Position numbers and translations under genes: made by a program. The notes below the pieces were generated by a model. That model searched no databases, had not been told where the DNA came from, and saw only the letters and a list, made by a program, of their open reading frames with translations. A DNA stretch of 64,000 bases, from contig CM106585.1 of the NCBI GenBank assembly GCA_048013815.1, positions 17,980,001-18,044,000 of the forward strand, read 5' to 3'. The number at the start of each line of letters is the position of its first letter. Positions within the stretch are counted from its first letter, which is position 1. The stretch is from Setoptus koraiensis. Lineage: Eukaryota; Animalia; Arthropoda. Positions 24,966-48,325 of the stretch are shown here, piece by piece.

Positions 24966-26420
24966 ATGGAGGCCCTCCGGGAGTTAAATATCAATGACAG
25001 AAAATTGGTCCCGATCAAGGATCTCACACCCGAAATCGCTGGCCAGAAGGTATGGGTGCGTGCGAGGGTGCATAATACAACAGGCCGAGGGAAGCAGGCC
25101 TTCATCATTCTCAGAAAGAAATATTTTACTGTCCAAGCCATCATCAGGGTTTCAGACACAATCACCGCGGACATGGTCAAATTCGCTAAATCGACGACCA
25201 AAGAGTCTATCATCGAAGTTTTTGGTTTGCTCAAGGAATCACCTGTTCGCATACAAGCATGTAGCCAACAGAACGTTGAATTGGAAATCATCAAGCTGAA
25301 CGTTGTCTCCGTGGCGGAAGCACGCCTTCCTTTACAGATTGAGGACGCAAGTCGGTCTCAAGCAGAGATAGAGGCCAAAATTGCGGAACTACGTGCAAAA
25401 GCTGGAGGGGATGATGAAATTCTGAAAATTACCGTCAACCAAGATACCAGACTCAATCATCGTCACATTGACTTGAGGACACCAACCAATCTTGCTATTT
25501 TTAGTGTCCAAGATGCTGTGGAAGATCTGTTCACTGGTGCATTGCGTAGCAGAGGTTTCAAGAAAATACATGCTCCCTCAATTATAGAAACAGCAAGTGA
25601 AGGTGGAGCCAACGTCTTCAAAGTCTCCTATTTCAAAAAGAATGCCTTCCTAGCTCAATCTCCTCAGCTCTATAAACAGATGGCGATCTCAGGCGATCAT
25701 GAACGAGTTTACGCTGTTGGTCCTGTATTTAGAGCGGAAGACTCCAACACCCACAGACATCTCACAGAGTTTATAGGCATGGATTTGGAGATGGAAATCG
25801 TAGATGACTACCATGAAGTGATCAAACTCATCGGCGATGTTTTTGTCGATATGTTTCGCGGTCTGCAACAAAAATACCAAACAGAAATAGATATTGTCAA
25901 CAAGCAATACCCGGCTGAACCATTTTTATTTTTAGAGGAAACTCTAGTGCTTAAGTTCCCCGATGCCATTTCGATGCTCAGAGATGCTGGAGAAGAGATT
26001 GGCGATGAGGATGATTTATCCACCCCACAAGAGAAGTTGTTGGGTAGAATAGTTAGAGAGAAATATCGCACCGACTTTTATGTTTTGGACAAATTTCCTT
26101 TAGCAGTGAGGCCTTTCTATACTATGCCTGACCAGGAAGATCCCAAATATTCTAAATCATATGATATGTTCATGAGAGGAGAGGAGGTTTTGTCTGGAGC
26201 ACAGCGTATAAACGATTACAATTTATTAGCCGAAAGGGCTAAGCATCACAAGATTGATGCCAAAACCATTGAGCCCTATTTGAATTCTTTCAGGCATGGA
26301 TGCTGGCCTCATGGTGGTGGAGGTATCGGCTTGGAGCGAGTGGTTATGCTTTTCTTGGGTCTGGATAATATCAGAAAGACATCCATGTTTCCGCGCGATC
26401 CAAAACGTTTAACACCTTAA
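24966..26420 (+). CDS. DARS1: Cytoplasmic aspartate--tRNA ligase (intronless CDS)
   Basis: OB-fold [76 protein letters not shown] and C-terminal [10 protein letters not shown]. Confidence 0.97.
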
Positions 26421-28984: not shown

Positions 28985-30508
28985 ATGAGCGCTGCCAGAT
29001 TGGCCTCTGCGGCCAAAAAGACCATTGTCATCCCAAATAGAATTCAGCGTGGACCAACTGATATCCTCAAGGCCTTGTCATCGACAGTGATACCTAGCCA
29101 AGCTAAATATGCACCCTTCATGACAGATGAACCCTTTCTCAGAATCAGAGGTGTCAAAGCAACAGCCCTTGCTAAAATATCAGGAATAAAAACTGCCAAG
29201 TTAATCCTCAATGAGCATCCTGAAATATTTAAAAGAGATGAGTCAGAGCCCAAAGTGGAAGATTTTCAGGCGCCCGAACTATTCACAGAAGATATGGACT
29301 TGAATGAAACAGATCTTAGGTGGTGTATCGAACACGTTGACGTAAAAAATGCAATCACAGCCTACAATGTAATGAAATCTAGAAATATCGAGATCGACAC
29401 AACTATCCTACAAGAGTTCTTTGAACTGATATGTTACTACAACGAGTCAAACCCGCCAACAAGCGAAGAGGTTATAGAGATGCATCTAGGGCAACAAAGT
29501 CTATCAGGTAAATCGGATTGGAATAAGGATGGTGTGGCCGAAAAGGTATTCATCGAGTTGAAGGAAAGAGGAGATAAAGTCAAAGCTTACAACACAATAA
29601 TTTTGGGTCTCTCTAAGCATGGTCAATCATCGAGGGCTCATCAGTACTTTCAAGAAATGAACGAGCAGAAACTTGCTGCCTGTGTCGATGTTTACAATTG
29701 CTTAATTAAAAGTCTACATGGAGAGAGTCGGCAACCACGAAATGTAGACAAGACTGAAGATAGCGTTGTAGATAATCAGTTACTGAAACTCATTCAACAA
29801 ATGAATGAAGAGAATGTAACCCCAAATAGACAAACATTCAACATACTACTGAGAAAACACTTGTATAACGGTCCTAGGCACGATACTAAACATCCTATCA
29901 GACTATTCAATGAGATGGTCTCGTTAAATATACAACCGTCGTTGACGACATATAAGATTTTGCTAGAAAATCTATTCAATCAAGATCGAGGTGATCAGGA
30001 TCTCATTAGAAGCACCATCGTGAAAATAGTTGATACTATTAAGTCAAAACGCCACTCAATAGTGACGCTTCAAGATGACCAAGACAGGTATTTCTTCCCG
30101 TTCTTGATGAATCAGCTTAAGTTCAACATGAGGGATCCTGAGTTGGCCAAAAAAGTGCATTCTGCTTTCATGGCGAGCCCATCATTGAGCGCAAACACGT
30201 CCACTTATTACACTAACTTACTCGAAATATCCTTCACCACTGATACAATGGAAAATTCAATAAGTCTTTATGAGGAGATAGTGCCATACCTCTATAGTCC
30301 GACTAAAGAAGTTTTCGAAGCCATCATCGAGGCACTGGAACTCTTTGGGGGAAACGAGAGCTTTAGGAATAGAATAATTGATGATCTGAGGCAGTTTGAC
30401 AAAGACAGTATAAAAAATATCTCACTTTTGATAAAGGATTACAAACCATCCGTAGACGCGCGATACATGTCTAAACACGTAACGAGGGGACACAGAAATG
30501 AGAAGTAG
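28985..30508 (+). CDS. PTCD3: Pentatricopeptide repeat protein PTCD3 / mitoribosomal small-subunit protein mS39 (intronless CDS)
   Basis: N-terminal IVIPNRIQRGPTDILKALSSTV motif typical of arthropod PTCD3. PPR-like repeats (AYNTIILGLSKHG, VYNCLIKSL, PNRQTFNILL, PSLTTYKILL). Confidence 0.85.
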   Translation: MSAARLASAAKKTIVIPNRIQRGPTDILKALSSTVIPSQAKYAPFMTDEPFLRIRGVKATALAKISGIKTAKLILNEHPEIFKRDESEPKVEDFQAPELFTEDMDLNETDLRWCIEHVDVKNAITAYNVMKSRNIEIDTTILQEFFELICYYNESNPPTSEEVIEMHLGQQSLSGKSDWNKDGVAEKVFIELKERGDKVKAYNTIILGLSKHGQSSRAHQYFQEMNEQKLAACVDVYNCLIKSLHGESRQPRNVDKTEDSVVDNQLLKLIQQMNEENVTPNRQTFNILLRKHLYNGPRHDTKHPIRLFNEMVSLNIQPSLTTYKILLENLFNQDRGDQDLIRSTIVKIVDTIKSKRHSIVTLQDDQDRYFFPFLMNQLKFNMRDPELAKKVHSAFMASPSLSANTSTYYTNLLEISFTTDTMENSISLYEEIVPYLYSPTKEVFEAIIEALELFGGNESFRNRIIDDLRQFDKDSIKNISLLIKDYKPSVDARYMSKHVTRGHRNEK

Positions 30509-30574: not shown

Positions 30575-31480
30575 CTATTTCTTATTAGGTTTGATGATAG
30601 CTTTCATTTTACACAACTTGCGTTTTTTATACATAGCCTGCATTTGAGGTGGAGGAGAAAGTTTTGCACGATTTTCTCCGAGTCGCTTTATCCGCTTATT
30701 ACAGGCTTTAAGCTTCGACATTATGTCGGATCCAGTGAAATTTCTCTTCCATAGAGCATGAAACAAATCCAGCTCACGTCCAGTAAAGTGAGGAAAGGCA
30801 TCAGAATGAAAACGTGCAGAACATTTTGTCTTCATTGAGTATTGATGAGTCTTCAAGATCGTCAATAGTAATGCCAATTGTACTGGGGTCCATCCAGGAT
30901 AGATCGAACTCGTCGAAGATCGATAGCGCATCATCACACCCTGTTCCTTCTGCCGAGGTACATTAACAAGCGCTGCAGTCTCGATGGGTGCATCAGATGT
31001 TCTATGTGGGTCTTGCGATTTGTCCTTTTCTAACTCTGGTAATGTGATTGGATTGTCGATTTCGCCGGCGCTGTTGTTGCAACTGTCTGATGCCGGTGTT
31101 GTCGTTGAGGTTATTGGTGCGTTTTCTTTTAGCTCATTACGGTTTTTCGACTCATGTAAAGCTAATCGTTTGCGCAATCGTTCATTTTCTGACCTCAAGA
31201 TTCTGTTCTCCTCCTCTAGTTTGTCCACCATGGCTCTCTTTTTGTCTCTAGCAGTTTGCGCCGCAATTCTATTTTTCATCTTTCTTCGTAGCATCTTTTC
31301 GGCTTGTGTTAGATGATCAAGACGCTGGCGTGTTCTTTTACGCACCAATTGATTATTGTTTTGTTGCATGATTGTGCTCTCGACATTGGCACCATAAATT
31401 GAAGACTGTTTGGTGTCGTCGTCCGACGATAACATGTAGTCATCGTCGTGACTGCTCAGGCTACCTGCCAAAGAGGGCAT
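30575..31480 (-). CDS. XBP1: X-box binding protein 1 (bZIP); unspliced form 301 aa, predicted spliced form 218 aa (stop at 30801-30803)
   Basis: bZIP RKRTRQRLDHLTQAEKMLRRKMKNRIAAQTARDKKRA. An IRE1-type intron is present. The unspliced tail carries an HR2-like hydrophobic segment (WTPVQLALLLTIL). Confidence 0.93.
   Translation of the reverse strand: MPSLAGSLSSHDDDYMLSSDDDTKQSSIYGANVESTIMQQNNNQLVRKRTRQRLDHLTQAEKMLRRKMKNRIAAQTARDKKRAMVDKLEEENRILRSENERLRKRLALHESKNRNELKENAPITSTTTPASDSCNNSAGEIDNPITLPELEKDKSQDPHRTSDAPIETAALVNVPRQKEQGVMMRYRSSTSSIYPGWTPVQLALLLTILKTHQYSMKTKCSARFHSDAFPHFTGRELDLFHALWKRNFTGSDIMSKLKACNKRIKRLGENRAKLSPPPQMQAMYKKRKLCKMKAIIKPNKK
30953..30975 (-). promoter_or_regulatory. 23-nt non-canonical IRE1-cleaved intron of XBP1 mRNA
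   Basis: mRNA sequence GAGACUG^CAGCGCUUGUUAAUGUACCUCGG^CAGAAGG. Both cut sites are CNG^CNG motifs in hairpin loops (CGAG-ACUGCAGCG-CUUG; CCU-CGGCAGA-AGG), 23 nt apart. Confidence 0.9.
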
Positions 31481-38557: not shown

Positions 38558-40661
38558 CAGCAAACAGGATGTGATGAATAGACGCCAACGTTATTTTTTT
38601 CAAAACCCGATCAAGATCCATCCCATACGCGGTACAATAATCTTAATCACATTATCAATATTGCTAAATAAGATTGTTGAGTCATTTCCAGAATGATTGA
38701 ATGATTCGGTGTAGGTGCAATAAAAGAATGGATTGAGAATTTACTCACATTGTTTTGTATTCGTGGCCGAATATACTGCCAAAATAAGAGAACTAGTCAA
38801 CAGGGAGTGGCTGTTTTTGCTGATTTGAAATCAAATGAAGCAACAATAACGCGCGATTGCGAGCCAACTCTTGTAACATTTATACATTTGCAATGTTTGT
38901 ATCATGCGTGGCGTCATCGTCGGTCATTGGTGCCAGTGACACCATTCCAAGTCAAATCAATATATAAATAATTATATATTGATAAATTATATTATAAATA
39001 GTTGATTATAAAGATGAAGTATGAACACGATGCTATAGCTAATTAAGTAAAGTTAATAAAGTTTATCAATGATTGAACTAGTCAAATGAGCCAATCGAGT
39101 CAATTGAATACATTTACGATGAGAGTAGTCGATCGGCCAGCGGCTGACCATAGCCAGTTATCAATGTTTAGTGATACGCCGACGAGTTTGATGCGTTCAA
39201 AAGATTAATAATCAGGCACGTGATGCCGTATTGTTTGACACATTATCACGCGATTTCCGTCTACTTTAACAAGTAAATCTAAGGCTAGTGTTTAAGAATG
39301 TGCAAGCAAGCAACAAGGAACAGCAAACCGATCGTATCAAGTTCTGCAGTTGTCGGCCAGACTGGGACCAAGTTACATATGACTATGTGGCCATGACGAC
39401 CAAGCCAGCCGTAGGCGACAGCACAGTGATAATCACTTGCGATCAGACGTCGCTTCTCGATAGTTGCTTTCCTTTTGCCCGGTTGAATTGTGTCTGTTGA
39501 ACTTGCTGTTGGTTAGACAAAACTCGTCGATTGAAGGAGGCTTTGTCTCACCGAGCTGGCAACTGTATCCGATGACGTCGAGTGTAGAGTCAGAGCTAGC
39601 ATACAACGTTGTGACTTCGCTCTAACTAGCATGCTTTGCGACACATTTTGGCCACATCCGGACCATGCCTGGGCTGTCACTGGCGTGTTGCAAAGTTGAC
39701 ATGGCGATCAACAACAACAACAAGAGGGGCCTCCAGAAGTAACAATACAGCGAGAATTTCTTGCTGATCGGATGAGATGCATCACTAAAGAGTCGACCAG
39801 CAGGAGCTCTGGCGGCCGCGCTGCCGCGAGAACTAGAGGCGATTGTACGAGGCTATTGAATGACAATTTTATCTGTTATTTTATTCGTTCTTAGGATTAG
39901 CTGGATCACAGTATAACAATCAACTAATTCCAAAAGATTTTACGAATTTCACGAAGAGGTGCTCACAGGGTCATCGGCAGGAGCGCCCAAGTGCGAAAAT
40001 TTGGATTTTGTTCAAATTTGGCGCCGCTCCGATATAATTGTGCACCGCAATTGTGAATAGCAAGCAGAGCGAGTGCAAGAGCGAGAATTTATGTGGATTA
40101 GAGGCGCACAATGCGCTGCTTTTGTATGGAATGGTCGGTGAGCATTGCTAACCCAGACTAAATATATATATATATCCCCGATATGACGAGATGTGGTGGT
40201 TTATTTCCGACGTGAACGACAACAACAACAACGACAACGACAACAACAACAACGCCGTCGCCCCTATTCATGCACACACACACACGAACAATAGTTGTAT
40301 AGTGCGAATTACAACAAGATTATTTAGTTAAGACATCACGGTGCATCAGTCGGCCAGAGGCAAACAACGCCAACAACAACGCCGATATCCTGACGTGTGT
40401 GAATATACTACAGTGTAGTTGTGAGCAACAACCAGACTTTAAAGAGCACGCCAGAGACAATTGTTAACCGCAACGAGTTGCTAACGAACTATTATATTCA
40501 CAAACGTTTATTTGCGACGAGCGAGCGAGCACTAGATAAAGCGAGAGAGAGAGAGAGAGAGAGAGAGAGCGACAGAGCGAGCGAGACTGAGGTCGCCACC
40601 AGCATTCTTAATATTATTGATCTACGCCAGTGGGAACAATACAATCACAACCAAAATTATC

Positions 40662-42805
40662 ATGGCTTCGTATGATAAAAATCCAATTTTTGATTTGCAA
40701 AGAGTGGTAATGAAACAACGCCAACTACTATTGTTACAACAACAACAACTATTGCAGCAGCAGCAACAACAACAGCGCCAAGAGCCATCTCCGATTTTGG
40801 TGCAGCAGCAGCAGCCGCATCAGCAACTTGATTGCAGTAACAACAATATTGCGGTATCTAATAACAGCAAAAGCACAAACAACGACATTATTAACATTAA
40901 ACAACAATCAGATGATGACAGCAAACTGATGCAAACGCCGTCCGCTGATAGAAACCTCCCGGCGCAAACATTGTCGCCAAACGGCAAGTCGTTGGCAACC
41001 ATTCAAACTAAACAGATACAACAACAACAACAACAACAACAAGATCATCATAATAACAAGTCACACGAAGTCACTACTAAATCAGAGAATCACAACAACA
41101 ATAAGTTAGCAGCAGACACAAAAATAATGGCAAATAATGTAACAGCAGCACCAGCGACACACGACATAGGTGATAACGACGGAGCGTCTCGCCTTCAACA
41201 TGACCACAGCTCAGCCGTCAACGCTGCAGTCATAGATAAACGTAGCAGCAAGGATAGCAACAAAATGGACACCGATTCCTCGGCCCCCAATGAACTGTCT
41301 CCCTCACTGTCTGAGCCATCGTTAGCCAGATCTTCTCCCTCTACAACCAAAGCCGACGTCACTAAAGAAGCACCAACCGCTAAGGTGTTAGACACTTCAA
41401 AATGTAAGCTTACTGGTGATCAATTAAACGGCACCGCAAATGGTAAGCGCCTTCTCTCGGGCGCAGAAGAGCGACGAGAAGAAGAGCGACGAAAAAAAGA
41501 CAATTCGCAGTGTGTTGATCCATGCAACGCAGCCTCAAAAGGTGCCCCCATCTCAGTACCAGTAGCAGCATCAGTAACTGCGCCCATTTCAACCTGCGTG
41601 ACCAACACAAATCTAACTGCGACGCATGACATATCAGCTACGGCTACCACTGACAACATTCGTAATACACCTCAACCATCAACAACAACAACCAGCGCCA
41701 CAACAAACAATAACGCTGGAGATAAATCAGCCCACCCCAAACCAGGTGATCAAACAATCAATAAACCACACAATCAAATCAACGATACCACCAAAACCAG
41801 CCAACAGAATAGATGGAGTGAAAATTATAAAAACATGAAGTTGGATGGTATCATCTTTATTGATCACGATGGCACAATTGTTAATTTTGTTGTTGTCAAA
41901 AGCCCAATGTAAGTAATTGAGTATGATGCTGTGAGTTCTTTCCTATCAGTGCGCAACCAAATATCTAGTCTTGATTTTTAAAGCTTCCGACAGAAACATG
42001 TCATGTGGATATCTCGGGGTCTCAATATAAATACTAATGCTGTCCTCTTCGTACATTCAATACCTCTCTCAACTGATACACTACATTCTAAACATTCTAA
42101 CATTAAATTCACTGTAGTAAAGAGATAGGCGATCCTGTATATAGAACCAAAGTACATTTGGACAAATTCGGTCGGCCAATCCTAGCGCCAGCTCAAACCT
42201 TTGATCAGATGATACAAGCCAAGAGGCGCCAACAAATGTTGTTATACCCAATAAGTTCTTCATCGCGAGCTGTTTCACCATCAGAGTTACTAGCCAACTC
42301 GAACAATCAGGACATGGGTTCTTTCATTATCCACCAAGACACTGCCAGAACAGTAACCACTTCAAGAATTTACACGGGCCGTAGGAGGCCAGCGCGTCGA
42401 AAGAAGGTTCCTACGAAACCTGACTCCTCACGTGGTAGCGGTGCAGGTGTTGGTGTTGGTGGTGGTGGTGGTGGTGGTGGTGGTGTCGGTGCCGGTACCG
42501 GTGCCGGCGCCGGCACCGGTGCTGGTACCGGAACAGTAACAAGTCGACCAAGAAAAAGTTCCAGAAGACCAGTTCGAGGTACATCCAGAAGAAAACTGAC
42601 AGCCAATGCTAGACGTGCTGCTGCAGCCTCGGTTTCTTCGCGCCGGTTTCCGAGGACAAAAGAGGAATGCAAGGTCACCGATCCAGCCGTCCTCAACAGA
42701 ATTTATGGTTCAACTAACAACACCGCCACAACAGCAGCAACAGCAACAACAGCAACAACAACAACAACGACCACGACGACGAACGTTGAGCAAACTGTTG
42801 TCTAA
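40662..42805 (+). CDS. Orphan Q/N/T-rich protein of about 635 aa with basic, NLS-like segments; 2 exons, intron 41909-42144
   Basis: ORFs 40617-41912 and 42158-42805 join in frame via CCAAT|GTAAGT ... TATAG|A, giving KSPITKVHLDKFGRP. First ATG at 40662. No family recognised. Confidence 0.65.
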
Positions 42806-45103
42806 CTATTCCATGGATTCCATTTGCTTATGTTATACAAGGTCTGATTTAGCCGTTTACCACTTTCCGTACTTCCAACTGTACTACAAGAACACGAGAT
42901 ACGTGGTGATAAGGAGTTGGATATTTGTTCTGTTAAACAGGATTATAGAGGAAGATGAGAAAGATTGAAGCTTGGAAGTGGAAACTTACTATGAGAATTT
43001 CAATTTGATGTCACTAAAATTTAAACCTTTGTTGGCGGAACTAAAAGGATGCTTGTTTTTCAACCCCATCAAGGCAGCTCCTTTACCGGATGCTTGCCAT
43101 ATTTTATAATTGTTGGTGATCATCGTCCAGGTTTGCATGAAGTTTGTATTAAACATGTTGTAATTATGCACTCTTGCTGCCCTGAGCATGTACATAGTGT
43201 ACATTCTGAAATGATATCTTATCCATTCGTCTCCTCCAACCCATTTAGTAACGTCCTGCGACATGAAATCAGTGTCCTCTGTGTGCCTGGTGTAAAAAGA
43301 GCTTTTATTTATGCTATTTTCACCCACAACTTGCTTTATGAGGTAATCCATAAAACGGAGATCCTCGGTTGTTAGAGCAAGGCATTTTCTCAGTTGTGGG
43401 TCGTTAATTTCAATCTTATTCTCATCTATATCCACTATAATATCGTACATGTCTTTCTTTTGCTTAAATAAGAAATTGGTCGCCCCGATCACAAAGCTTT
43501 TGACTCTGGCATCAGCCATTAAATCAAGATAACTAATTGAAAGGTATGGTAGGCAGAAGGATCCGCGAGTAAATATTTGTAATGGTAGACCACATTCCTC
43601 CGGATCCATTCTACATAGTTTGAGGGCATATGGATCATCTACTTGAGAGCCATCTGCCAGTTGATCCTCGTCTGTATAGTTTAATGATTCGTGTGATTCA
43701 TCATCTGTAGTTTGTTCGGCATCATTTGGTTGGGGCTCTATTTGACTAGGTTGTCGGGCATCTGATTCACTTGTACTGACCTTCGAGTTATCATCCAGTT
43801 CTGATGGTTTGCTAGGAGTAATGTTTGATTCATCTAATTCGTCTTTGGTAATAGTCTGAAAACTATCCGAGAAACTGGAATCACATATTATGACTACTTC
43901 CTCTTTTGAAGTATCAAAGAACACTTTATCTTCTCGTAAAGATTTTGAGTGTTCTGAAGTTGAGCTAGTGTTAGCATCAGTTGTATCATCAGAAAGTTTG
44001 AGCGCTTCCAACAAAGCGGGACTCAATTGTAGATCACAAGCTGAATGATTCAGTCCGCCTGATTCTAGTAGTCCGGGAAATAGTGAGCAGAACGACAGAA
44101 TAGTGACACATAATTCTCTGACTGGTGACTTATAGAACAGAATCTTTTTCTCCAGTAGCATGGCCTTATAAAGTACTAATACATTGTTACCAAATTGTGC
44201 TATTAGCGATCTTGCTGATAGTCCCAAGAATATCGATGAATCTTTAATGGAGTTTTTTGTTAGAGTAGAATTGAGATTATCATAGGTTAGTCTGAGAATG
44301 TCCACTTTGCTAAAATCTAGCTCATCAAAATAGGCATGTGTGATCATCTCAAGTTTTGATCTAATAAGTCCAAATAATGGTACTACACTCAATATGCACA
44401 CTGACTTTTGCACTGAGATCCTTGTCATATCATCTGAACGATTCAATAATTTATCAGCTTGTATTTGTCTGTAACAGGCGGTGCCGAAAATTGTTTTGAC
44501 CCCAGAACATTGTTGATGCTGTTGCTTTTGTTTGTCATAATTATTATCACTGGCGGCCTCTTCTTTTTGCCTGGAATTTTTGTTTTCTCCATGCTGGTCC
44601 CGATTATCGTCAGCTACAATGTTACTTTGAGTTTCATCTTTGCAATTATCACTATTGTTGTTGTGTTTCGTTTCATTGTCTATATCGGGCATTGTAAAAT
44701 ATATGGTGTCACTGTCGAAATTGTGAGCTCCATCTGGTAAGCAGAGTAGAGGCAGTGTCTTCCAGCAATTCGGTAATGTAATCGGGTGTTTGCTAGTGGA
44801 AAAGACTCTTCTACTAGGTGGTATAGGCGGATAACAGTAGTCCACTTGATAGCCATGTTTGTGATGGAACCCAACAACCATGATGTGTCTAATGACTCTG
44901 TTCTCGTTGAGTTCATCTGAATTCTTGGGCGCCTCGCTGAGGCCGTCATCACTGTCGTCTTCGTCGTCATTGTTGTTGTCCATCTCAATGTTGTCGTTAC
45001 CGTGCGGATTGGACTCCTCCGACACTTTCTCTTCACTGCTGATTAATTCGTCTTGTTGAGAAGCTGGAGTGCCTGTGAGGTTGGCTCGTGGTTTGTTATT
45101 CAT
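42802..45103 (-). CDS. AVL9: Late secretory pathway protein AVL9 homolog (DENN-related); 2 coding exons, 45103-42990 and 42883-42802
   Basis: HIMVVGFHHKHGYQVDYCYPP, LPDGAHN, FGTACYRQI, SVQKSVCILS, VKSFVIGATN and GGDEWIR. The ORF's apparent TAG overlaps a GTAAGT donor. Splicing to TTGTAG|T gives KLKFSYTVGSTESGKRL, which resembles the vertebrate KLRFSHSVQNSERGKK as recalled. Confidence 0.92.
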
Positions 45104-45999
45104 GGCTAGAGAAAACAAGAGTAAGGAAATAAATCTCTTTTCGTTTGTCTAGTCCTTTTGGGGGCCTTAGATTGCTCGGTTGCGACATAATCTAGAGGTA
45201 ATCCGGTATATTTCCATGAAACTCCACATACGCCGTGATGTCACCCGTTGCAATCGTTGTGAGACAGGAGAATAGAAATAACAGAATCGAACTAACCAGC
45301 TGACTGCAATTGTGTGCAAATAATGCGCAGTAGACGCTTATTGTTCGGCGTGCAATTGGCGCGCAACAAAAAGTCCATTCGATGCGTTTTCTAGCGTTGG
45401 GGAGCGACATTTTTTCGCTCCGAATCAAAGCGCCACAACCACACAACTCACAATATCGACAACAACCACATGTCAGACGATTACGATACATTGGATAGGT
45501 GAGGATAGATTGGGGACCGTGGTGCCCCAATCTATCTGCACCAAAAAACCCTCAAAATGCACATGTTTTTGCGCTCACTCCCTCAACCAACTCTATGCTA
45601 ATAGTGAGCATTTTGAGCGGTTTGTGGGTGCTGCGGTGGCCGGGTTCGGGGTCGCGAGCACGACTTTTTTAACTTTTTTGTTCTTCATTTTGTAGAGGAA
45701 GAGTTCCTCTATCGATCTGGATGGGCCTATTCGGCGCACGCGGAGCTTTTCTGGACGAAAATCACGTTCGAAAAAAAAGTTTGCCGAGAAATCGCGACAT
45801 AAGGAAAAAGGGGGCCTATCACCGGAAGTTGGGGGGTCGTCCCCTGTCGACTGGTGGTGATCTGTCGAATTATGACATTCACATGCTCCCCGCCCCCTGA
45901 AATAGTTTGAGAAAATACCGTCGAAAATGGAACACATCCTTACTGCATAAGACGTTCATTCGAAGTGTTGTTTCCACTGGTGGGGTCAGAATATAAATT

Positions 46000-48325
46000 T
46001 TATCTATTTTCTGTGGCTATATGAACTGGTGCCTTTCCCGATTGTTTCGTTGACTCCTCGATTGTATCAGTCACATCGACATCCTTTGTCTCTGTCACGA
46101 GAAAATGCAAACAAATTGTCAGTATGAATGCTACAGTTGTCAGTATTATCTTGTAATTAAATTGATCACCAACCCACTGGGCAATATGTGGCGAAAATGG
46201 TGCCAGGACGCCGCTTATTCCTAGCGCTGTCATAATGATTGAGGCACCGCAGTTCCTCAGTTCCGTGGGAAACACCTCATAAGCCACCAAGAATAATATA
46301 ATTGTTCCACTTGTGCATGATACCTTGGCGACAAAATCTAATGCACTGACAAAAATAAGTGAATTATCGGGCAGTTGTAGTAATGGATGCTCCACGAGAC
46401 AAGACAGGCCCGTGATACAAATAAAGAAGACGAGGCAAGTTTTCCGTTTGAATATCACCATAAAGGCCACCGATACAGCTAGGCACACCCACTCGCTGAG
46501 ACCGGTTACTATGAAATTAGAAAATATCGATAGTTTGTCCATGGAGAAGTGCATTGTTCTTATGAGATAAATGAAGTTGTTGAATAGAAGCGCCGACCAG
46601 AGCGTTACAAGATTCAACAAAAACGACGGATGTTTGAATAAGCTCGCCATGCCAGCTTTGTGGCTCGTTTGCTGTTGTTCGGGAAAGACAGATGAATGCA
46701 GTATATAGTTGACATCGACAATTTGTAACAACATGCAGCTCGACTATAAATCCTAAATTCTAGTTTAATCACCTGTGATAACCTCTGGCCTCTGAGATAT
46801 CTATCGATTTTCGATTCCAAACACTCGTCTGTGTGCTGTATCCGATTGAGCTTTGCAGCTCGTTTAATCTCCTTGCGTGCAGCTTTATATTTGCCATTCA
46901 CCTTGAGCCATCTAATGGATTCTGGCATGACGAACATCCATGGTAAACTGTGGTCAAGTATGAGTTTCGAAGGTGAAAAGATCATCGATGTCTTACTGAA
47001 TCTGCTCGTAGTTCAGCACGACACAAACACAGCATAATTTTTCTACCGTACCTGATTAGCAACAACAACGGACAGATAGCTGCAATGTCAAACCAGTGGC
47101 GGGTGTTCACTCCTATAAATGCCAGCATCATGATACCGAAACCCTTCAATTAGTTAGAGTGACAGATTTGTTAATGGCTGTTGTTCAGCTAGGACGATCA
47201 TAAATTAAGTGATATGATTATCTTGGTGTATTTACCCATCCAAAGTGGTTGGCGGTAGAGGAAAAGGTCCTATATTTGGCACCAAGTATTTCTATCTCTA
47301 CATCCAAAATATATGGAGGCATTCAATTGTGAGCTTAGAGAGCCATTTGTATCGGTTTACCGACTTAATGAGTACTACTGAATGTACAAACTTACGCGTA
47401 GTATACAAAACTTGATAACCGCTTGAATTGAATGCCGACAAAAATCGCAACAGTATGAGAATATAGATCGTGGGCGAAAGTAGACTGGCTGCACCAAATA
47501 TCAAAGCCATGACATGACATAGAGAATGTGTATTCCATCGTCCGAACCTATCAGCAAAATATCCCCAGACCATGCTCCCAAATAAAACTCCAAAAAAGTA
47601 GATTGTCATCAATAGTGAACCGAGCATTTTCCTATTGCAAACAAGATTGAACTGACAAATAGATTTAAATCAATCGCTTGAAACGTAATCTGCATCATCT
47701 TCGACTACAATCATTTGAAAAATTATAACTGTTTAAGCATGGAGATTGTAGTGTCAACAAAGTAAATAGACTATCGCATATCGTTCAATTAAATACCTCA
47801 ACAGGTAGGGTGCCCTCAAGATTGGAATCGGGATAGGTCCATTGGGTGCAGGGTGAAATAGAGCCATTGTGGTTCGCGTAATTGCATCTGTCGGTCGTGT
47901 TTTTAGAACGATAGTTTGAATGGCTTGACGAACGTCGGCATGGTGTCGCAGAGAGATATTTTATTTTCGAGAAATAGTCCTCAATGAATATTTACCTTTC
48001 ATTTGTTCCATTGTTAATTAAGACTGACTCTGGTGGTGTTATACACTGAAAATCAAATTCCGAAGGAAGGGAAATAGACAAACCGAGGCTATCTATGGCA
48101 ACTGTCGTCTCGCGAATGAAGCTGAACAACATCAAGTTGAGATGATAAGGTCCAAACTGGCCTTGTGAGCATAAAGTTAGATCGACATTATTATTATTAT
48201 TGATGATTCGCAATGATCTGCTAGTAAGTGATTTGATTTTTTCGTTTTAATGAACTACCTATTAAGTCGTTCAAATCTATCGATCTCTCCTTTGTTTCCC
48301 CACGTTCGCCTTTCTCCTCTCCCAT
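46000..48325 (-). CDS. SLC22/organic cation transporter-like MFS protein, copy 1 (most divergent), multi-exon
   Basis: MGEEKGE..IDLNDLIG|QFGPYH, LVCNRKMLGSLL, WGYFADRFGR, MPESIRWL, YEVFPTELRNCG and ETK tail. Confidence 0.85.

Follow-up and report, generated by a model that had tools for sequence, protein, structure and literature searches.

Probable four-nucleotide stop-on-stop interlock between AVL9 and a convergent gene of an unnamed mite family in Setoptus koraiensis

The window, a stretch of 64,000 nucleotides from Setoptus koraiensis (GCA_048013815.1, contig CM106585.1, positions 17,980,001 to 18,044,000), belongs to a very compact genome of gall-mite type and harbors an AVL9 gene on the minus strand and, converging on it, a plus-strand gene that is called gene X here. 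The minus-strand ORF comprises 709 codons (42992-45118) and is closed by a TAG at 42991-42989. It carries the Pfam Avl9 domain at residues 76-647 (E 1e-108, profile positions 1-378/379), and 206 homologues of it were found, named AVL9 proteins of mites and insects among them. In the gene model, exon 1 of AVL9 covers 42990-45103, begins with the ATG at 45103-45101 and holds 704 codons plus the TA of a split Tyr codon. Gene X, as modelled, is composed of 635 codons in two exons: exon 1 (40662-41908) starts with the ATG at 40662 and ends with the AT of a split codon, an intron of 236 nt follows (41909-42144, phase 2, GTAAGT...TATAG), and exon 2 (42145-42805) closes with the TAA at 42803-42805, its last sense codon being GTC (Val). 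A (GA)n run of about 30 nt was also observed at 40540-40575, some 90-120 nt upstream of the gene X start codon. The searches, alignments and dN/dS estimates for both genes were carried out separately on each exon.

The G at 42989 is both the last base of the TAG that closes the AVL9 ORF and the first base of a GTAAGT donor (42989-42984), so a direct reading of the DNA bears out the overlap of the apparent stop with a splice donor that had been claimed from the sequence alone. The acceptor AG lies at 42885-42884 with a pyrimidine-rich stretch ahead of it, giving an intron of 106 nt in phase 2 (42884-42989, GTAAGT...TTGTAG). Splicing would join TA (42991-42990) to T (42883) and restore a Tyr codon, whereas retention of the intron leaves TA+G, that is, the TAG stop. 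Behind the split Tyr, 42882-42802 translates into 26 residues followed by a TAG at 42804-42802, and the terminal exon (42802-42883) thus contains the last base of the Tyr codon, 26 codons and the stop. AVL9 as modelled has 731 codons, of which the terminal part contributes 27 when the Tyr is counted, and its last sense codon is AGT (Ser).

The predicted tail was compared with 34 proteins (P0003-P0036) that rank with the two named eriophyoid AVL9 proteins, those of Fragariocoptes setiger and Aceria tosichella. In all 34, the motif KLK[LF]SY runs uninterrupted into a tail of the AVNSSEKG..INQTLNGIGKWSIWNN type, while the window equivalent is reached only by splicing. The 26-residue exon peptide matches residues 619-643 of P0023, directly behind KLKLSYA, with 56% identity (BLASTP, E 3e-8). 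When ten tails were aligned, the AVL9 of the window and nine mite tails, the motif x-x-x-S/T-E-x-G-K-x-x-N-Q-T following KLK[LF]S was present in the window AVL9 solely in its spliced form; almost every other mite AVL9 protein in the comparison conserves this motif. The likeness of the added tail to the conserved AVL9 tail, which the sequence-only reading had noticed, is thereby confirmed by the alignment of C-termini across mites, and the tail is also shortened, as that reading held, relative to the other mite AVL9 proteins with an alignable tail. It halts two residues past the W-N of the conserved motif, about 14 residues after NQT, whereas all 34 eriophyoid-type proteins go on past W-N with IASAA... 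and tens of residues, amounting to a further 35 to >100 residues of low complexity. The annotated AVL9 of F. setiger differs in its tail (YNFSDHV..., L002 8120-8240), which has almost no similarity to the conserved mite tail although KLKFSY is intact, and it lacks an intron at the site of the terminal intron of the window; either the tail has diverged or the annotation misses something.

The same gene pair was detected in a sister species on Logan contig L001 (SRR33593474), with about 87% DNA identity and a dS of about 0.6. On this contig, automatic ORF calling cuts AVL9 off at the TAG that the donor creates (P0001, 4030-6159, 709 aa) and reports gene X as a pair of ORFs, 245 and 399 aa long, an example of how public protein sets come to contain truncated versions of genes of this kind. 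Exon 1 of AVL9 has a dN/dS of 0.09 between the two species (dS 0.62), with all indels being multiples of 3. The terminal exon is 92% identical and free of indels, while the intron is 58% identical and carries indels of 1 and 3 nt; the TAG/GTAAGT and the acceptor are kept in L001, as is the phase. The terminal exon differs from that of L001 at six positions: five of the changes are third-position and synonymous in the AVL9 frame, and the sixth replaces Tyr with His. The probability of at least five of six changes falling at third positions is about 0.02 by our own binomial estimate, which is based on six changes only, and this pattern argues for a coding role of the exon. The terminal exon is also the presumed 3′ UTR of gene X, which could be an additional source of its conservation.

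The trombidiform mite Dinothrombium tinctorium contains an AVL9 intron of 54 nt that splits the codon following KLKLS behind its second base. The split codons read TCA CA/GTAAGT...AACAG/A GCA in Dinothrombium (L010) and TCA TA/GTAAGT...TTGTAG/T ACA in the window. Because the codon and the phase are the same in both, the terminal intron is ancestral. The lineage of the window has retained it, and the rest of the eriophyoid-type sequences, F. setiger among them, have lost it. Massive intron loss has been reported for eriophyoids (PMC7738191; bioRxiv 10.64898/2026.08.24.746826), and loss of the AVL9 intron fits this. The AVL9 introns are kept differently between mites: of the ancestral introns the window has only the last (42884-42989), the F. 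setiger gene has introns in its main body (L002 7600-8240), with a read-through stretch between IRYHFR and MYTMYML among them, and the Dinothrombium gene has at least three (L010 3500-3850).

An unspliced AVL9 would present a different picture, in which the protein ends at the TAG at 42991-42989, the tail-like segment is a decaying relic, and the two genes are separated by a 184-nt spacer with no coding overlap. Automatic calling yields exactly this ORF, of 709 aa here and as P0001 in the sister species, and intron retention costs just 27 residues. A relic, however, is hard to reconcile with an exon that is 92% identical beside an intron that is 58% identical, that has no indel and whose changes are synonymous in five of six cases, nor with the conserved GT, AG and phase, the orthologous intron of Dinothrombium and a tail motif shared by nearly all mite AVL9 proteins compared. 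We therefore consider the unspliced protein very improbable as the main product, although intron retention may occur as a minor isoform. The splice from 42989 to 42884, which had been proposed to add a tail reaching the TAG at 42804-42802, is supported by three comparative results, namely the homology of the tail, the Dinothrombium intron and the exon-intron contrast with L001, and it is likely to be real.

On the plus strand, exon 1 of gene X encodes an N-terminal extension rich in Gln, Asn and Thr and the first half of a conserved N-domain, while exon 2 encodes the second half of this domain, an Arg-rich motif, and low-complexity runs of Gly/Ala/Thr and poly-Thr. The exon 1 frame runs without a stop through 431 codons in the window and at least 399 in L001, with 14-45 stops in the other frames. 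Overall, dN/dS against L001 is 0.21-0.37. In exon 2 it is 0.21 (dS 0.51), and all six indels are multiples of 3 (3, 3, 3, 12, 15 and 87 nt), one of the 3-nt indels lying directly ahead of the stop, with the last residues conserved. The first 145 codons of exon 1 have a dN/dS of 0.23 and the last 45 one of 0.02, with faster evolution in the middle. The most divergent part of this middle, at about 41190-41575, is nearly unalignable with L001, with an apparent dS of 1.6 and some indels that are not multiples of 3; the frame is nevertheless open in both species, perhaps because frameshifts have compensated one another or because a disordered segment is evolving very fast. The microsatellite of GGT/GGTGCC type at 42420-42540 in exon 2, which encodes a Gly/Ala/Thr run, is missing from L001 through the 87-nt in-frame indel. 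At the intron, the GT at 41909 and the AG at 42143-42144 agree with the junction that had been suggested from the letters (41909-42144); L001 has exactly the same splice sites, whereas between them the intron matches at 54-58% and differs by indels of 1, 3, 4, 4 and 12 nt.

The word-index protein search retrieved no match for the end of gene X exon 1, and the sole match for exon 2 was the ORF of the sister species. The exhaustive HMMER search (phmmer, 1.8 billion proteins), in contrast, recovered four single-exon ORFs of 265-390 aa from four other mite assemblies (P0123-P0126, E 6e-5 to 1e-3). They have in common an N-terminal domain, some 85 residues long and ending in QTF-x-x-x-IQAKRRQQMLLY, and a C-terminal Arg/Gly-rich motif, PG-x-x-I-x-LP-x-G-x-V-x-x-KSRRGGARAGAGRKRSR. 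The last 40 residues of gene X exon 1 align to the N-terminus of the four proteins, and the family N-domain is matched half by the end of exon 1 (33% identity to P0125) and half by the start of exon 2 (49%); the intron lies between the two halves, which supports the splice model. The C-terminal motif has only a loose counterpart in gene X, G-S-F-I-I ... S-R ... R-R-K-K-V-P (21-27% identity), and gene X differs from its relatives in its large Gln/Asn/Thr-rich N-terminal extension and its longer low-complexity tail. A fish protein of 1680 aa in the HMMER list (P0122) was set aside as a probable low-complexity match, made up of four stretches. Pfam gave nothing above noise for gene X or its four homologues, the PDB sequence-profile search returned no matches and the ESM Atlas no usable one, and the AlphaFold model of the N-domain (mean pLDDT 62) had no Foldseek match at E ≤0.001. 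Gene X had been described as an orphan, a description that does not hold, as it is a member of a small unnamed family that has so far been seen solely in mite assemblies.

The same data bear on whether the plus-strand ORF is translated at all, at least up to 42805, or instead represents a non-coding transcript of low complexity or a wrongly modelled last exon. Such a reading could draw on the failure to find Pfam, PDB, Atlas or fold matches, on the large share of low-complexity sequence, and on the middle of exon 1 with its poor alignment and some out-of-frame indels. It is countered by the dN/dS and the consistently in-frame indels of exon 2, by the conservation of the last residues next to a 3-nt indel ahead of the stop, and by the homologous mite family with its conserved neighbourhood, and we regard it as extremely doubtful. 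Because of the dN/dS, the in-frame indels and the open frame relative to L001, gene X is probably translated up to its stop, and the coding status that had been assumed for the ORF 42158-42805, which closes with the TAA at 42803-42805, is likewise favoured by its homologues.

With both ends modelled in this way, the stop codons of AVL9 (TAG, 42804-42802, minus strand) and gene X (TAA, 42803-42805, plus strand) interlock in the CTAA at 42802-42805, and every coordinate of the stop-on-stop junction given by the sequence-only reading proved correct. The coding sequences overlap by 4 nt, stops counted, so that the two stops have two bases in common, and each also covers the wobble position of the partner's last sense codon with one further base. 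The form [C/T]TA[A/G] is the sole interlock possible for two stops on opposite strands, and it touches just the wobble base of each last sense codon. The tetramer is kept in L001, with the 3-nt in-frame indel just upstream of it in gene X. Four conserved bases alone are not significant at about 87% DNA identity; what exceeds chance is the purifying selection on both frames right up to CTAA in two species, with both genes showing dN/dS below 1, homologues, and abutting exons with in-frame indels or none. As only one other species carries the junction, this amounts to a single evolutionary observation.

The neighbourhoods of the two genes differ in other mites. At the loci of P0123-P0125 (L005-L009), the family gene lies between a divergent DARS1 and, where the contig permits, a convergent NAA35, at a spacer of 51-85 nt from the latter; the family genes there are intronless (L005 2288-3460, L006 6001-6798, L009 6001-6954). 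DARS1 and gene X are the only genes that these loci have in common with the window, where DARS1 (24966-26420) lies 14 kb upstream of gene X on the same strand and is not adjacent to it, and NAA35 is absent from the window. The neighbour of AVL9 in F. setiger (L002) is NDUFA12, about 620 nt away, with no adjoining gene X homologue; at L003 an MFS transporter follows AVL9 and the neighbours of the window are missing, as they are at the L004 locus. The adjacency of AVL9 and gene X is therefore absent from six of six other mite loci examined and shared with L001 alone, and since each gene has other neighbours in other mites, it is a derived arrangement. The earlier proposal that a deletion removed the spacer does not stand as written and is one conceivable history among others, because the absence of the adjacency from the six loci implies that a rearrangement joined the genes; the AVL9 tail may have been shortened by a deletion, a breakpoint or a new stop.

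We consider it likely that these are two real coding genes that converge with their coding sequences interlocked by four bases, a state that most probably arose by passive compaction and is held by purifying selection. A rearrangement in the common ancestor with the L001 species would have set the genes tail to tail, leaving the AVL9 tail short; the spacer would then have shrunk to the deepest overlap possible at no cost to either protein, a natural end point of spacer loss, and purifying selection on both proteins would have kept the junction thereafter. This passive course is a parsimony argument. Another convergent pair in the window is only 66 nt apart, an mS39/PTCD3-like gene (plus strand, ORF ending at 30508) and a bZIP gene (minus strand, ORF ending at 30575), and 369 overlapping annotated gene pairs have been reported from the eriophyoid Floracarus perrepae (bioRxiv 10.64898/2026.08.24.746826).

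With no spacer left, the 3′ UTR and poly(A) signal of each gene would have to lie inside the last exon or intron of its partner, and if both genes have 3′ UTRs, their mRNAs should overlap in antisense at the 3′ ends. In both species, the 400 nt downstream of each stop contain weak variants only and no canonical AATAAA, and the Rfam search of 40000-46000 found no known RNA family. The possibility that an antisense ORF at 42370-42696 is one more AVL9 exon was rejected, for its core is the Gly-repeat missing from L001 (the 87-nt indel) and it is unlike AVL9 tails.

The forced overlap of the transcripts, together with a layout that has survived a dS of about 0.5-0.6, might be taken to indicate that the interlock is functional, with the antisense 3′ overlap coupling the genes through transcriptional interference, double-stranded RNA or small RNAs, or shared 3′-end processing. 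Purifying selection on abutting coding sequences suffices for the conservation, however, and the two genes are unlinked in the six other mite loci, which speaks against an ancient partnership; moreover, neither a strong conserved poly(A) signal nor a conserved structure came to light, and AVL9 and gene X have no known functional relation. A dedicated regulatory role is accordingly judged unlikely. A broader version, in which the 4-nt interlock of eriophyoids is a recurrent, selectively stabilised end state and the antisense overlap of 3′ UTR and coding exon serves mutual regulation, strikes us as somewhat more doubtful still; were it true, these mites would be animals with a genome-wide system of paired gene termination. 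Passive compaction under purifying selection thus remains our preferred account. The locus nevertheless offers a place to ask how cleavage and polyadenylation work with signals inside the coding sequence of another gene, and it holds a lesson for annotation, as ORF-based callers cut AVL9 at the donor-made TAG and its partner was mistaken for an orphan. Its interest lies mainly within the genome-wide pattern, and a single case overturns nothing.

As regards known systems, AVL9 is a DENN-related protein of the late secretory pathway (PF09794), and the window gene has the full Avl9 domain and the C-terminal motif of mites and insects, with the tail cut short. Overlapping transcription has reportedly been described in the compacted genomes of microsporidia and nucleomorphs (Williams et al. 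2005, PNAS). There, as in the Floracarus perrepae pairs and at the locus presented here, loss of intergenic DNA drives neighbouring 3′ ends together; those reports, however, concern general overlap of transcripts or annotations, without the specific stop-on-stop coding interlock or its conservation across species. Convergent overlaps of 4 bp are established in prokaryotes, where the tetramers are CTAA, TTAA, CTAG and TTAG and the distribution of overlap lengths jumps at 4 (Lillo and Krakauer 2007, PMC2174442). The geometry is identical, with stops on opposite strands sharing two bases over 4 nt. Unlike the prokaryotic pairs, AVL9 and gene X are nuclear, spliced and presumably polyadenylated, so that a 3′ UTR and a cleavage signal are needed inside the partner. 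The junction seems to be an extreme case of genome compaction and not a mechanism of a new kind, and it illustrates how far an animal nuclear genome may compact, with two spliced genes of no known functional relation meeting at zero intergenic DNA in a tetramer typical of bacteria.
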